A stretch of DNA of 63,589 nucleotides, the filler included, from Lenisia limosa (taxonomy: Eukaryota > Protista > Breviatea), in the NCBI GenBank assembly GCA_001655205.1. It is 18 parts of 18 records of this genome, joined end to end, with 100 filler letters (N's around TTAATTAATTAA, not from the genome) between each part and the next. Parts side by side here need not be neighbours in the genome. Positions count along the whole stretch, not along the records: positions 13,253 to 18,155 come from LPNZ01000838.1; 17 more parts are not named here. One strand, given 5' to 3'. Shown piece after piece: positions 13,253 to 18,155 of the stretch. The position numbers and the translations under genes were made by a program. The notes beneath the pieces are model-generated. The model did not search any database. It had not been told where the DNA came from and worked only from the letters and a program-made list of their open reading frames with translations. How positions within the stretch are numbered: position 1 is the first letter of the stretch; each line of letters begins with the position of its first letter.

Positions 13253-13881
13253 GAGAAGTGTCAGAGAAATAATAACCAGCTGGCAAGGGTGGCAAAGCTG
13301 GCACATGGTGACGTCATGAGTTCAGGTATAAAAGTATATAGAGAGTATAGGACCAGGGTAGGGAGAGACCCAGCAGAGAAGTGTCAGAGAAATAATAACC
13401 AGCTGGCAAGGGTGGCAAAGCTGGCAAAGCTGGCAGAGCAGAGAAGTGTCGGAGAAATAATAACCAGCTGGCAAGGGTGGCAAAGCTGGCACATGGTGAC
13501 GTCATGAGTTCAGGTATAAAAGTATATAGAGTATAGTACCAGTGCAGGGAGAGACCCAGCAGAGAAGTGTCAGAGAAATAATAACTAGCTGGCAAGGGTG
13601 GCAAAGCTGGCAAATTTGGCAGAGCCGAGAAGTGTCAGAGAAATAATAACTAGCTGGCAAAGCTGGCAAAGCTGGCAAATCTGGCAGAGAAGAGAAGTGT
13701 CAGAGAAATAATAACCAGCTGGCAAGGGTGGCAAAGCTGACAAAGCTGGCAGAGCCGAGAAGTGTCAGAGAAATAATAACCAGCTGGCAAGGGTGGCAAA
13801 GCTGGCAAAGCTGGCAGAGCCGAGAAGTGTCAGAGAAATAATAACTAGCTGGCAAAGGTGGCAAAGCTGGCAAAGCTGGCA
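13253..13881 (+). repeat. Complex tandem array: 65-bp unit GAGAAGTGTCAGAGAAATAATAACCAGC + (TGGCAAAGC)n, 8 units, two with an extra promoter-like cassette
   Basis: Unit starts at 13253, 13376, 13441, 13562, 13627, 13692, 13757 and 13822 (65-bp period; two long units of 123 and 121 bp). The array runs off the scaffold end and into a gap. Confidence 0.95.
13309..13333 (+). promoter_or_regulatory. CRE-like palindrome TGACGTCA plus TATAAAA cassette (second copy 13497-13521)
   Basis: TGACGTCA at 13309-13316 and 13497-13504, each followed 10 bp later by TATAAAA. Motif match only; function is inferred. Confidence 0.4.
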
Positions 13882-14298
13882 NNNNNNNNNNNNNNNNNNN
13901 NNNNNNNNNNNNNNNNNNNNNNNNNNNNNNNNNNNNNNNNNNNNNNNNNNNNNNNNNNNNNNNNNNNNNNNNNNNNNNNNNNNNNNNNNNNNNNNNNNNN
14001 NNNNNNNNNNNNGTTCCAGTGGTCTTGGGGTTTTCCCGGCAAAACCCCAAACGCTAACGTATAACCAGTTGGGCAGTCCGGCGGTAATAATGGGAGGAAA
14101 GGCATACATGGTATAAAGTCCCAGCCCACAACAAACAACGAAGCAAAAACAAAACTAACAACAGATAAATATAGAAAACTAATAGCACTGGCTGGCGAAG
14201 CTAGGCCTAGAAAAGATTAGGACAATCAAAAAAAACAAAACAAATCAAAACAAAAAACCGAGGCACCAGATTAGTCGTAAGCCTACCCTGGTGGCGCC

Positions 14299-17200
14299 CT
14301 AGTCCGAGATGGTGTCGAGGTCAATACTGTCGTCGTCGTCGTCGGAGCCGTTGGAGTGCGGGAGAATCGGCTGGAAGTCGGTTAGGAACAACAGCAAAGA
14401 AATGACCAGCGACCGAGAAACTAAAGAAACCCAAAAAAAAAACGCAAAAACTGCAAAAGCATACTGCAAAATTGGGAAAGGGGTCGTCAAGAGGGTCGGA
14501 GGCCGGCAGGCTTGGCTGCGCTAGGACGGGAGCAGCAACCGGCGGCGGAAGTGGAAGGTGGACCGTAGGCTTGGCAACGACGGGGTGTCTTGAGAAGGCG
14601 TTGACTAGGAGTCTGTTTGGCGTTGGTGCGGCGGGACCGAGGCGGGCCTTAGGCCTCTTTGCCTTGTGCTTACGAGGCCGCTTGGTGGGGCGGGCGGCGG
14701 CTGGGTTAACCGGGGACTTGGGCCTGGCTTGGCGGTCGGGCAAGGGGCTGGGCGGCGGAGTGTCGCGGGCAGGAGCAGCGTCCGTAATGTCGTCGAGGGG
14801 AATATTGGCGACAACGGCGCCAGGCTCGGGGTCCAACTCGTAGTGGACCTTGCGTTGGCCGGCTGGGCTGCGGCCGTCGCCAGGCAACACCTCCACAACT
14901 TGGTAGACGGTGTTGTGGAGGCGGACGCGGCTGTGAAGTGGCAGACCAGTCATTAGCGTGTTGTAGTGGTACACGTATCGCTGGTTGGCTGATAGGCAGG
15001 CGAGGTCGCTGGCACGGGCAGTAGCGGCAGGGGGCTGTTGAGAAAGGTCGGGCGACGGCGTACGGCGGCGGCGGGCTTTTGCGAGCTTTGCCTCCTCGAC
15101 GTTGCGGAGGTACTCGGCCTCGTCCAGGCTGTCGTTGGACTCGTCGGACTCGTCGGACTGGGATTTGTCGGCGGTGTTGGGCTGGTCGTCGGGGCGGGTG
15201 GCGTGGCCGGCCTCGGCGTCCACCCTGAACTTGGCCTCAGGAAGGCGGACGAGGTTGGGGAGGATCTTCCGGGTGGCGGCGGCAAGGGCGGGGCAGTTGA
15301 AAGGGCCTTCGCGGGCGAGGAGGCTGGGCGTGTACGGCTGGACTGCAAACGGGGCGCGGGAGGTCTTTCGCTTCGCCGGAGGTGGCNNNNNNNNNNAGGG
15401 AGGATCTTCCGGGCGGCGGCGGCAAGGGCGGTGCAGTTAAAAGGGCCTTCGCGGGCGAGGAGGCTAGGCGTGTACGGCTGGACTGCAAACGGGGCGCGGG
15501 AGGTCTTTCGCTTCGCCGGAGGTGGCTGGTAGTGGGCCAGCAACGTGACCTGGGCCATGTTGGCCAGGACGCCGTCGCTGTAGAGAGGCACAACAACGCA
15601 GTCGTCGGTGCGGCGGCGAGTCGTTGCACAGGCGTGCTCAACAAAGGTCGCGGAGTTGATATTGACGACCGGTTCGCGTGAGCCGTGCTGGCGAGGCCTC
15701 GGCCCGGCCTGGACCATTTTGAGCATGACTGTGTGCTGGCGGCCGACGCGGGACTCACTCGCCTGGGCAAGGACGTCGTTGTTGCGGTCAGGGGAGAGGC
15801 CGCACATGGCCAGCACGCGGCCGCAGCGGTTGTAGTGTAGTAGAGCGGTGTCAGGGTCGACCTGGTGGCGGAGGTGGCCCATGGCCTTCAGGCAGAAGGC
15901 GAGGGCGTGCAGGCCGACGGCGGCTTCCAAGGCAGACCGCCAGGCCGGGGCGTAGTCAGCGGCCCCAACGGCGAAGCGCGAGTAGTCCTGGTCTTTGGCC
16001 GAGGTTGGAGCGGCGGTGGTAAAGGCCCACGGCAGTGGGTCGTGGTCGGGGCGGAAGTTGGCCGGCAGCGGCAGGCGCGGGAAGGCGAAGATGTCAATCA
16101 TGAACGGGGCGGTGCCCTCTTTCGGCTGGACCGGCCGCCAGAACTCTAGGACACTCATCCACCAGCCGTGGACGGCGTAGGTCGGGTTACCGGCCTTGCA
16201 GAGGCCCGCCCAGAAGTACGCCAGGTTAATGGCGCAGCTGTCTACCAGGCGAACGGCGGTGGTGAGGGCGGCGTCGTACGCGTCCGGCCAGTGGATGGCC
16301 ATCGCCACGTCGCCGGTGGGCTTTTTGACAGGGTCCAGGCAGGACACGACCGCACTTGCGATGACGGAGTTGAAGAGGGCCTGGGCGGCGGCGGGCGGCG
16401 ACCACTTTCCTCTAATGGAGGGCATCACGATCGCGTCGCCGCCGTGCCAGCCGACAACAGTCGACTCGCGGGCCGACACGCAGCGACTCGCGTCTGGGCC
16501 TTCGGCGAGACTGGTGACGAGGGCGGCGACAACATGGCTGGCGTCCTCTGTGTCGTGCGTAAGGAGGTTGAAGAAGTATGTAACCAACGCGAGCGGCAGG
16601 TCGTCGACGTAAGCGTTGATAGCGAACGGCGAAATGGCAGCAATGGCGGCGACAACGGCGGGTGTGAGCACTTCGCGAGCTCGAGCGGCCTTCGCACCGG
16701 CGGTCGTGGCCAGGACCATCGCGTAGGCGTTTGCCACGGTCATGCTGGCCTTTGACACGACGACCTGGGCGTGGATGAGAGCGGTAAGGAAGTCGTAGTG
16801 ACTGGCGCGAGAGTACGGCGGCGAGGTTGAGATGAAGTTCGTTAGGCTCTCCAGGCTGAACATCAGCCGGTCTTCGTAGACTAGCGCTACATGCTGGACG
16901 TCGTCGAAGCGCCGGCGCAGCGGGCCGGTCCAGACCGACGGCGTCATGTTTGCCAGCTTGCCGGACTCCATTAGCCAATGGCCAAGGAAGGACGCCTGCG
17001 GCCGACTCTGAGACTTGCCGTGCAGCTTGCGGGCCTTGAGGACGTCTGCCACAGGCGAGGTCGCCAGCGGCGGCTGCCCGTTGGCCAGGGAAGCGAGAAC
17101 AACGGTGCGCAAGAGGCCGCGCGGAGTGTGAACCTCGTCATCGCTCTGCAGCGCGCGTAGACGGTAGCTCTCAGAGAGCTGGCGGGCGTCGGCAGCGGTC

Positions 17201-18021
17201 GGCGTGACGTAGACTGCAGCGGCGACGGTGTAGGCCTTGCGCTCCTCGCGGCCCAGGCGGGAAAGGGCCGGGAACATGGACGCAATCTCCATGCCGTGTG
17301 TCTGGGCCAGGGGCGAGTCCGCGTAGTAGCCGGCAGCTACCAGGAGAAGGTGGACAATGTGTTGGCCGTTCACGATGCCGACGCGTTTGTCGACAAAGGC
17401 AGCCGGCAAATAGCGGTCGGCCTGGGCGTAGTCCTCGTCCTCGCGACGCACCAGACCCAAAGCCAGATCTGGGTCACGGCAGGACGCCGCCCCAATCAGC
17501 CTCACGGCACGGACAAGGCTAAAGTCTCGGCAGTTGACCACCGTCGACACGCCACTCTCGGCGGCAAGGAAGAGGTCGCTCATCGTCACCTGCACGTCGT
17601 GACGGAGGGCTGTCACCGGATGCAGGTTGTCGGCGTTCTGGCTGACGTAGGTTGACTCTGGTGTCGACAGGTCGGTGCGGCCGCAGAAGGTCGGCAGTTG
17701 CTTCTCAAAGGAAGCTAGCGTGGTGTGTTCCAAGGGAGGGTCTGGGAGGATGCTGTTTGTCGGGAAGGCCGACGCAATGACCTTGACGGAGTTGGCCTTG
17801 CGCCCGAGTTCGGAGGCGACGTCTGTACCAGAGGACGTCTCGGCCTTGTTGAGGACGTTAGCCCAGAGGGCCTTGTCGGCGTCGCTTGGGTCTCCAACTG
17901 CCTAAAACTATTAGGGACCTGCCACACCCTTCTTTGTAGGTTTCAGCTGCCCACCATGATTACGGCCAGTCGCCAACGTCGGACGCGAGCACTGTTTGGC
18001 CACGGGGCAGAGAGTTGAAGT
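14299..18021 (-). CDS. GC-rich orphan gene of about 1,120+ aa with spliceosomal introns; candidate viral or mobile-element protein (5' end truncated)
   Basis: Open frame 17901-15397 (835 aa) continues, after removing the ~130-bp overlap duplicated around the 10-N gap, as 15256-14465 (264 aa). A phase-0 intron 14464-14371 (GTATGC...CCTAACCGACTTCCAG) joins the last exon PILPHSNGSDDDDDSIDLDTISD* (14370-14299). Upstream acceptors at 17902 (CCCTAATAGTTTTAG) and 18022 (CTAACCCCCCTCCCCCCAG). The track's 926-aa and 300-aa ORFs are two parts of this gene. Confidence 0.8.
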
Positions 18022-18050
18022 CTGGGGGGAGGGGGGTTAGAACCGTCGGA

Positions 18051-18155
18051 AAAATTTTTAGGAATCCTCCGGAGGATTCCCAAAATGAAAATCATCAAAT
18101 TTTTAGGAATCCTCCGGAGGATTCCCAAAATGAAAATCACCAAATTTTTAGGAAT
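18051..18155. repeat. 45-bp tandem repeat, each unit containing the perfect 20-bp palindrome GGAATCCTCCGGAGGATTCC
   Basis: Palindromes at 18061-18080 and 18106-18125, a third starting at 18151; AT-rich 25-bp linkers nearly identical. The array is truncated by the scaffold end. Confidence 0.95.

Follow-up and report, generated by a model that had tools for sequence, protein, structure and literature searches.

A GC-rich orphan gene between two repeat arrays in Lenisia limosa, possibly one arm of a virus- or plasmid-like nuclear element

The window is a stretch of 63,589 nucleotides (nt) from the breviate protist Lenisia limosa (assembly GCA_001655205.1), and the piece treated here is the 4.9 kilobases (kb) at 13253-18155 (LPNZ01000838.1). 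This window piece carries a large minus-strand gene, named gene W, which encodes the large protein W. The first-pass annotation had described a large minus-strand gene, rich in guanine and cytosine (GC), between two repeat arrays. Such a gene is present there, with a GC content of 0.66 and a third-position GC content (GC3) of 0.81. Its paralogue encodes P0001, a protein of 1,212 amino acids (aa) that is 40% identical to W and collinear with it over residues 2-793 (E 2.6e-146). P0001 lies on contig L001 (9.5 kb), which belongs, like contigs L002 and L003, to the ENA assembly ERZ3820729. All relatives of W that were found lie in that assembly.

Gene W, its introns, gaps and arrays

The window piece comprises the following features.

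13253..13881, plus strand: downstream (3'-side) array, eight units with a common 23-nt head
13882..14012: gap of 131 N, outside gene W, between the downstream array and the 3' flank
14013..14298, minus strand: 3' flank or untranslated region, GC 0.44, T-rich in gene sense, holding a hairpin
14299..17957, minus strand: gene W, transcription unit from ATG to TAG, three predicted exons, about 1,123 aa
14299..14370, minus strand: exon 3, 23 codons (14370-14302) and TAG (14301-14299), conditional on intron 2
14371..14464, minus strand: intron 2, tentative, 94 nt, GTATGC...CCTAAC...CAG, phase 0, GC 0.40
14465..17901, minus strand: exon 2, 3,437 nt as assembled, GC 0.66, GC3 0.76-0.81
14795..15058, minus strand: conserved C-terminal module of about 90 residues, 49% identical to P0001
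15258..15526: duplicated 129-nt stretch around the 10-N gap, copies 15258-15386 and 15398-15526, an assembly artefact
15387-15396: gap of 10 N inside exon 2 of gene W
15400..17901, minus strand: conserved body, residues 2 to about 830, collinear with P0001 at 40% identity
17902..17954, minus strand: intron 1, 53 nt, GTGGGC...CTAAT...TTTTAG, phase 0, common to the paralogue (L001 5233-5325, 93 nt)
17955..17957, minus strand: exon 1, the start codon only, inside the conserved 11-mer ATCATGGTGGG
17958..18051, minus strand: 5' leader, 94 nt from the ATG to the palindrome array (87 nt at the equivalent place of P0001)
18052..18155, no strand: upstream array of 45-base-pair (bp) units, 2.3 copies, 98% matching, cut by the piece edge

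As assembled, gene W has an open frame of 982 codons on the minus strand (17901..14956). The chance of so long a frame in DNA of 65% GC is about 1e-11, by the authors' own rough estimate. The frame is coding, since the paralogue P0001 matches it at E 2.6e-146. The GC contents of the three codon positions, 0.66, 0.50, and 0.81, are the signature of genuine coding sequence. The gene is intact and contains no stop in frame.

The start codon lies in an exon of its own. The first 20 residues of W are conserved with P0001, and just upstream of them the frame is closed and lacks a start codon. This comparison gives intron 1 good support, because the conserved N-terminus would otherwise be without a start. 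The 11-mer ATCATGGTGGG has a single occurrence in the window piece and a single one in L001, upstream of P0001, on the sense strand in both cases. It is followed after 53 nt (window) or 93 nt (L001) by the first conserved codon, which comes directly after a YAG acceptor in phase 0. With the 129-nt overlap counted once, exon 2 measures 3,297 nt, or 1,099 codons, and the model sums to 1+1099+23 = 1,123 codons. These values agree with the '~3.3-kb exon' and the '1,120+ aa' of the first-pass annotation. Intron 2 is tentatively predicted from its splice signals, the drop in GC, and the Phe/Cys-rich peptide that read-through would give, and it is not clearly present in P0001. The predicted exon 3 encodes an acidic tail with five consecutive Asp. 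In the unspliced alternative, the frame stops at a TGA (14321-14323) 24 codons further on.

The locus is also found in a public bacterial record. Contig L014 (CBDLPA010000087.1, contig ERZ3820729.6532, 1.9 kb) was found in the scan of GTDB genomes and equals window 16318-18155 at 99.9% identity, with two differences in 1838 positions. ERZ3820729 thus contains the locus of the window piece itself, and the piece and contigs L001-L003 derive from the same sample. L014 is filed in a metagenome-assembled genome (MAG) titled 'uncultured Colwellia sp.' (run SRR2018010, assembly ERZ3820729). Apart from this record title, there is little to suggest a bacterial gene, and the probability of such an origin is negligible. 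Only with a GT-AG intron spliced out does the N-terminus gain a start, and translation from the earliest in-frame bacterial start would lose 56 conserved residues. The leader has signals of eukaryotic type, and no prokaryotic relatives occur in NCBIfam, PHROGs, PADLOC, the GTDB genomes, or the protein libraries. L014 is only 1.9 kb long, and short contigs are easily mis-binned. The Colwellia MAG is contaminated, and the presence of L014 in it is a binning error. Given this label, the sequenced culture is non-axenic and probably marine.

The 10-N gap lies between the two 129-nt copies, which are offset by 140 nt and identical at 125 of 129 positions (97%). Read in the gene W frame on its own side, each copy gives a 42-residue peptide, and the two peptides differ at two residues. 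Two overlapping contig ends were therefore left unmerged at the gap, which is no biological frameshift, and the frame runs on across it. The copies differ at four of the 129 positions (3%), two of them residue-changing, which far exceeds the 2 in 1838 (0.1%) that separate the independent assemblies over the neighbouring stretch. It seems that the assembly joined two slightly different copies or haplotypes at the gap, and the genome probably contains two such versions of gene W. In practical terms, the gap is a fixable artefact in an intact gene, and the public 'Colwellia' MAG carries a contig of eukaryotic type. The flanks of the 131-N gap were also compared, and no overlap was found between them; this gap probably consists of array copies that were not resolved.

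The downstream array is cut off on its left by the end of the piece and on its right by the 131-N gap. Its units are spaced at 123, 65, 121, 65, 65, 65, and 65 nt. The 18-nt module GGTGACGTCATGAGTTCA, with TATAAAAG after it, is found in both long units (123 and 121 nt); the six short units measure 65 nt. The '65-bp CRE/TATA array' of the first-pass annotation is thus right as to the 65-bp array and wrong as to its content, as the TGACGTCA and TATAAAAG module occurs only at 13307-13324 and 13495-13512, in the long units, and is absent from the 65-bp units. The module faces gene W and is antisense to it. The 19-nt array module has six single matches in metagenome contigs and four in viral contigs. 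These are due to chance, since none of the contigs has arrays or related proteins. Repeats of 9 nt that contain CTGGCA stud this array (AGCTGGCAA, window 13278-13881) and the outer array of L001 (CTGGCAGCA, L001 88-210), near the TGACGTCA module in each. From their sequence they look like a second, phased binding motif.

The upstream array is as first annotated, a 45-bp palindrome array at 18052-18155 with 2.3 copies. Each unit holds a perfect palindrome of 30 nt centred on GGAATCCTCCGGAGGATTCC, and the array lies about 90 nt upstream of the ATG. L014 extends it by at least one further copy, to at least three. The leader carries CCGACGG beside the palindrome array, and a single CCGTCGG with an A/T run (about 18037-18047) abuts it. 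Rfam and tRNA scans of the window piece yield only sub-threshold hairpin look-alikes on this array. These are microRNA-precursor models (mir-5429, MIR1512, and others) at 18052-18139, with 29-36 bits against gathering thresholds of 64-100. MicroRNA genes are rejected here, as the scores lie far under gathering and the matches are generic hairpin look-alikes.

The 3' flank contains a hairpin at about 14025-14050, with a 10-bp stem (TTGGGGTTTT/AAAACCCCAA), about 250 nt 3' of the stop. Its DNA fold has -8.7 kcal/mol and a z-score of -2.5. The hairpin may be a 3'-end signal, and its likeness to G4T4 telomere repeats is probably a coincidence.

Protein W and its family

The absence of relatives outside its own sample makes W an orphan at the level of sequence comparison, as the first-pass annotation had proposed. 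Neither of the two pieces in which the protein was searched, one for each side of the 10-N gap, has a match in Pfam, NCBIfam, PHROGs, or PADLOC, and the C-terminal module alone has no Pfam match at E up to 10. Sequence searches of the PDB with each piece and with a two-sequence profile give only low-complexity noise. Scans of IMG/VR and of JGI metagenomes show no relatives, and an exact look-up of a 300-aa open reading frame (ORF) of the window returns no record. Word-index searches with the 834-aa piece and with an alignment of W and P0001 are also blank. The alignment query missed even P0001; the Ala-rich W seems to saturate the word index, and both negatives have little weight. A phmmer search of 1.84 billion representative proteins finds three relatives, namely P0001 and two short fragments (P0002 and P0003).

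The W body has Ala, Leu, and Val as its commonest residues. The tail around the conserved C-terminal module is charged and rich in Pro, Ala, and Arg, with basic patches and much Lys, Arg, and Pro, and is probably disordered. The tail of P0001 has a poly-Glu run encoded by (GAA)20 (L001 8341-8402), which W does not have. No internal repeats or transmembrane segments were found in W. The first-pass annotation had proposed an AlphaFold model as a check. AlphaFold2 gives the 834-aa body a predicted local distance difference test score (pLDDT) of only 36 alone and 31 with a four-row alignment, and in these low-confidence models the body is mainly helical. No motif of a polymerase, primase, reverse transcriptase, recombinase, or RNA-dependent RNA polymerase that is conserved in both paralogues is readable in W, and all five identities are rejected on this ground. 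The helical body, the charged tail with its small conserved module, and the lineage-specific palindromes tentatively suggest that W may be a DNA- or chromatin-bound maintenance or structural protein and not an enzyme of a known class.

The W family is known from one organism or culture only, where it comprises two intact lineages that are 40% identical, and decayed copies. In L003 lies a remnant, truncated at its 5' end and with at least seven frame changes and four stops, that is nearer to W than to P0001. L002 carries a family fragment of 96 residues with two stops. These decayed copies are flanked on both sides by kilobases of DNA with 38-49% GC and no long ORFs, and their flanks have no Pfam matches. 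In L002 6269-10827, several ORFs of 167-275 aa lie in patches of GC 0.48-0.54, also without Pfam match, and are possibly what is left of further genes of the element. Contig coverage is 25x for L001, 29x for L002, and 20x for L003.

The composition of the window piece is similarly divided. GC is 0.62-0.69 over 14450-17900, 0.34-0.48 in both arrays, 0.44 in the 3' flank, and 0.40 in the predicted intron 2. It is improbable that the piece stems from outside the host genome, from a free large DNA virus or a GC-richer eukaryote in the culture. The composition far from that of the 40%-GC contigs of the same assembly, the non-axenic sample with the same contig binned in a bacterial MAG, and the contigs with intact copies, which all end in repeats and show no host junction, are in line with such an origin. 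In contrast, the high GC is confined to exons, with 34-48% in intron 2, the 3' flank, and the arrays, and 39-49% in the flanks around the L001 genes, a pattern not expected of a GC-rich organism. The decayed copies of L002 and L003 lie within 38-49% GC DNA without long ORFs, the gene density is far under that of large DNA viruses, and the coverage equals that of other contigs. No search placed W in a conserved cellular eukaryotic family or the piece in a co-cultured eukaryote, the two outcomes that the first-pass annotation had set against a viral or mobile origin.

The helicase-like neighbour and the element

The locus of the paralogue repeats the layout of the window piece and adds a second large gene.

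L001 1-213: 98-bp array, carrying the 18-nt TGACGTCA module twice, with one base different (one S position), and a TATA-like stretch
L001 805-3636, minus strand: P0004, 943-aa ORF, helicase-like, divergently oriented from P0001
L001 3725-4075: P0005, 116-aa ORF upstream of P0004
L001, plus strand: P0001, with the palindrome array ending 87 nt before its ATG (94 nt in the window)

At both loci the 18-nt TGACGTCA module stands in an array and is antisense to the adjacent gene, where none is expected by chance. Between P0004 and P0001 lies a 0.8-kb inverted repeat of palindrome arrays, whose arms measure 233 nt and are 94% complementary. The arms are built from 44-bp units with a 26-nt palindrome, so that the period is 44 here and 45 in the window. 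The period and position of the palindromes are conserved between the loci, and their sequence follows the protein lineage. L003, which is nearer to W by protein, carries palindromes related to those of the window piece (GGAATCCTCCGGAGGATTCC), and those of L001 differ. The region upstream of the L003 remnant has four palindromes of the GGATCC-CCGG-GGATCC type, where 0.03 are expected by chance. The L001 centre also contains outward-facing TATA boxes, runs of (AACTG)n, and a 22-bp array of A-runs with GTCCGTCGGC. The last comprises six units of A-run and GTCCGTCGGC at L001 4706-4838. The (AACTG)4 runs stand on both sides of the centre, inverted with respect to each other, and are found again in L003 2694-2910. 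W, P0001, and P0004 have a codon signature in common, with a GC3 of 0.74-0.81, about 50% C-ending codons, and relative synonymous codon usage correlated at r of about 0.9. No paralogy was found between P0004 and the large proteins.

P0004 is probably a P4/D5-type superfamily 3 (SF3) helicase, a reading based on sub-cut-off matches in three libraries that agree. Genes for such helicases are typical of viruses, plasmids, and integrated elements. Within residues ~117-266, GAGGTGKS (Walker A), a hydrophobic stretch with D as its last residue, LLASN, and DRRL can be read. These may correspond to the Walker A, Walker B, motif C (S/T-N), and arginine finger that follow in this order, within about 150 residues, in SF3 helicases. 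The ATPase region was searched as a 241-residue query. Its best Pfam match is DUF5906 (E 0.0019, profile 2-114 of 114; 19.3 bits against a cut-off of 27.6). NCBIfam gives TIGR01613, 'phage/plasmid primase, P4 family' (E 0.011; 14.7 bits against a cut-off of 108.7). In PHROGs, the C-terminal parts of two 'DNA primase' families match, 1156 with E 0.039 and 1829 with E 0.14.

No primase (AEP) or D5_N domain is recognised ahead of the ATPase of P0004. Behind it come about 640 low-complexity residues rich in Ala, Pro, and Asp, with a 69-nt tandem repeat. The protein ends in CPLC...CPHC, which resembles a zinc ribbon and has weak MYND-type PDB matches (E 1.4). An exon-like stretch 3' of the called stop of P0004 encodes an acidic run of five Asp, comparable to exon 3 of the window. 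P0005 has no family match and is probably the first exon of P0004. Its first ~84 codons would come into frame with the 14 codons before the P0004 ATG if a GT...AG interval of about 170 nt were spliced out.

The best explanation, at somewhat less than even likelihood, is that the window piece is one arm of a new GC-rich virus- or plasmid-like selfish element in the nuclear genome of an AT-richer eukaryote. It is favoured by the same layout, shared cis-elements, and shared codon signature at the helicase-linked locus of the paralogue, and by the decayed copies in DNA of about 40% GC. The full unit would measure about 10 kb and comprise an outer array, the helicase gene, the central inverted repeat, the large gene, and an inverted outer array. 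The central inverted repeat would be a bidirectional promoter and probably a replication origin, where the helicase-like protein could unwind element DNA at the repeats. The palindromes may be bound by a dimeric protein that the element itself encodes, and W would provide the second core function of the element. The TGACGTCA-module arrays are inferred to be inverted terminal arrays and not parts of a circle, because at both loci the module faces inward and is antisense to the gene beside it. The arrays thus have one and the same orientation towards their neighbouring genes, and a simple circular genome is rejected for this reason.

The first-pass annotation had suggested an endogenous virus or a mobile element. 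The compositional island, its own codon signature, the lack of detectable relatives outside the sample, the small family with decayed copies in DNA of about 40% GC, the recurring arrays, and the helicase-like neighbour of P0001 bear this out in part. A capsid, packaging ATPase, integrase, protease, or polymerase gene, in contrast, is not recognised in the 4.9 kb of the window piece and the 9.5 kb of L001, the span to which the negative results below also apply, and the lack of a capsid, packaging, integrase, or polymerase gene counts against the element.

Several further points weigh against a selfish element. The helicase-like gene is not in the window piece, every one of its helicase matches is under the curated cut-off, and tblastn of the helicase region against 50,697 phage records gives no match. 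PDB sequence searches likewise found no helicase match for P0004, and a word-index search of the ATPase region matched only itself. The model of inverted terminal arrays is a matter of orientation logic alone, as no contig spans both ends. The right end of L001 stops before any array, and its subterminal regions show no inverted similarity. All known family members come from one sample, and the coverage of L001 equals that of L002 and L003, with no sign of an amplified episome. The role of W is a guess, with models that reach pLDDT 36 and 31. Spliceosomal introns and TATA-type signals would be just as expected of an ordinary nuclear gene, and no helicase-gene remnant was detected beside the L003 copy.

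The last two points belong to the main rival, which is itself rather unlikely. It holds that W is a lineage-specific host family, a fast-evolving chromatin-associated nuclear protein, with the arrays as promoter and terminator satellites and P0004 as an unrelated neighbour or an old viral insertion. The start-codon intron conserved between the paralogues, the leader and TATA-type signals, the charged tail with basic patches like that of nuclear proteins, and a coverage like that of other contigs are all consistent with a host gene, as are the lack of any recognised mobile-element or virion gene and of a helicase remnant beside L003. The features that P0004 has in common with the family, namely the inverted-repeat promoter region, the outer-array module, and the codon signature, are in contrast unexpected for an unrelated neighbour, and together with the decayed, truncated copies on other contigs they weaken this rival. 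The lack of relatives outside the sample among 1.84 billion proteins, and the coding parts as GC-rich islands in 40%-GC DNA, also speak against a host family.

A wider proposal goes beyond the selfish element as such and is correspondingly doubtful. The locus might belong to an unseen class of nuclear replicon or virus-like element of about 10 kb, with TGACGTCA-TATA inverted terminal arrays, a central inverted repeat of palindrome arrays as origin and bidirectional promoter, and only two large spliced genes. One would encode an SF3 helicase with no recognisable primase and the other a DNA-maintaining or packaging protein of 1,100-1,200 aa with a new fold, in lineages that are 40% identical within one host. 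If the selfish-element reading holds, the locus represents selfish DNA of the nucleus that relies on a replicative helicase of viral type. Such an element would lack all the other hallmark genes that are used to find endogenous viruses and self-replicating transposons, and would be missed by marker-based screens. It would add a new lineage to the very short list of small DNA replicons in eukaryotic nuclei. A protein of more than 1,100 residues without known fold or relatives would then have its function tied to a selfish-element lifestyle.

Comparison with known systems

Polintons and virophages: The W family resembles Polintons/Mavericks, Polinton-like viruses, and virophages in forming compositional islands in a protist genome, with multiple insertions, some decayed, and repeat-rich ends. 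Polinton-like viruses carry many short genes. Here, in contrast, only two large genes are seen in 9.5 kb, and they are GC-rich with spliceosomal introns. Polinton-like viruses measure 14-40 kb (PMC12220804). An SF3 primase-helicase is one of six genes common to all virophages, and the Mavirus-type S3H protein has no other recognisable domain (PMC3671162). P0004 looks like this S3H type, as no further domain is recognised in it. W, P0001, P0004, and P0005 have no Pfam, PHROG, or PDB-sequence match to a double-jelly-roll major capsid or a penton protein. No FtsK/A32-type packaging ATPase or cysteine protease was found either, and the only P-loop domain, that of P0004, is nearest to primase-helicases. 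There is no Pfam match to a protein-primed family B polymerase or a retroviral-type integrase, and no polymerase or DDE motifs are readable. Membership in these groups is unsupported, as the capsid, packaging ATPase, polymerase, and integrase of the hallmark list (PMC3671162) were not found.

Primase-helicases and giant viruses: The P4/D5-type primase-helicases (DUF5906, TIGR01613) of phages, plasmids, and giant viruses are the best named match of P0004 in three libraries. P0004 differs from them in its scores under the cut-offs, in the lack of a recognised AEP or D5_N domain, and in its long tail ending in CxxC...CxxC. Transpovirons are rejected as an SF3 analogue, since their helicase is of superfamily 1 (PMC3671162). 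The window piece and L001 have no matches to the Nucleocytoviricota hallmarks (major capsid, A32 ATPase, family B polymerase, and VLTF3). The low coding density and long non-coding repeat regions also differ from the dense, intron-poor coding of giant viruses.

Geminiviruses and CRESS viruses: In these viruses, divergent genes flank an intergenic hairpin with iterated binding sites, and one of the genes has an SF3 helicase domain. L001 resembles them, in architecture only, in its palindromic iterated centre between divergent genes, one of them helicase-like. The genes here are 3-5 times larger, nuclear, and spliced, however, and no HUH endonuclease domain is recognised. The outer arrays suggest linear or inverted ends and not a small circle.

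Nuclear plasmids: The Ddp2-type plasmid has one large Rep gene and a large inverted repeat. The Ddp family of Dictyostelium and the yeast 2-micron family have large genes without family assignment, and their repeat loci serve replication or partition. The large genes beside long inverted repeats and tandem repeat loci of the W family are similar in architecture only. A low-copy nuclear plasmid or episome of Ddp2-type layout, not integrated, is a quite improbable account of the locus. It would fit the large orphan ORFs that adjoin a 233-nt-armed inverted repeat, the palindrome arrays like those of plasmid origin and partition loci, and the contigs that break at arrays; natural nuclear plasmids are few and probably overlooked (PMC11962162). 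In contrast, the coverage is not raised to multicopy level, decayed copies lie in chromosomal-type DNA, no recombinase was found, and the orientation of the outer arrays, as the authors read it, does not fit a simple circle. No protein similarity extends outside the sample, and the phmmer negative covers the Ddp Rep proteins only if the library includes them.

CACTA/En-Spm transposons: These terminal-inverted-repeat transposons have subterminal arrays of short motifs. No transposase domain (DDE, tyrosine recombinase, or HUH) is recognised in the window piece and L001, which sets the W family apart from them. The W family nevertheless resembles them in its short-motif arrays near the presumed ends, which face inward and, by analogy, may be protein-binding sites.

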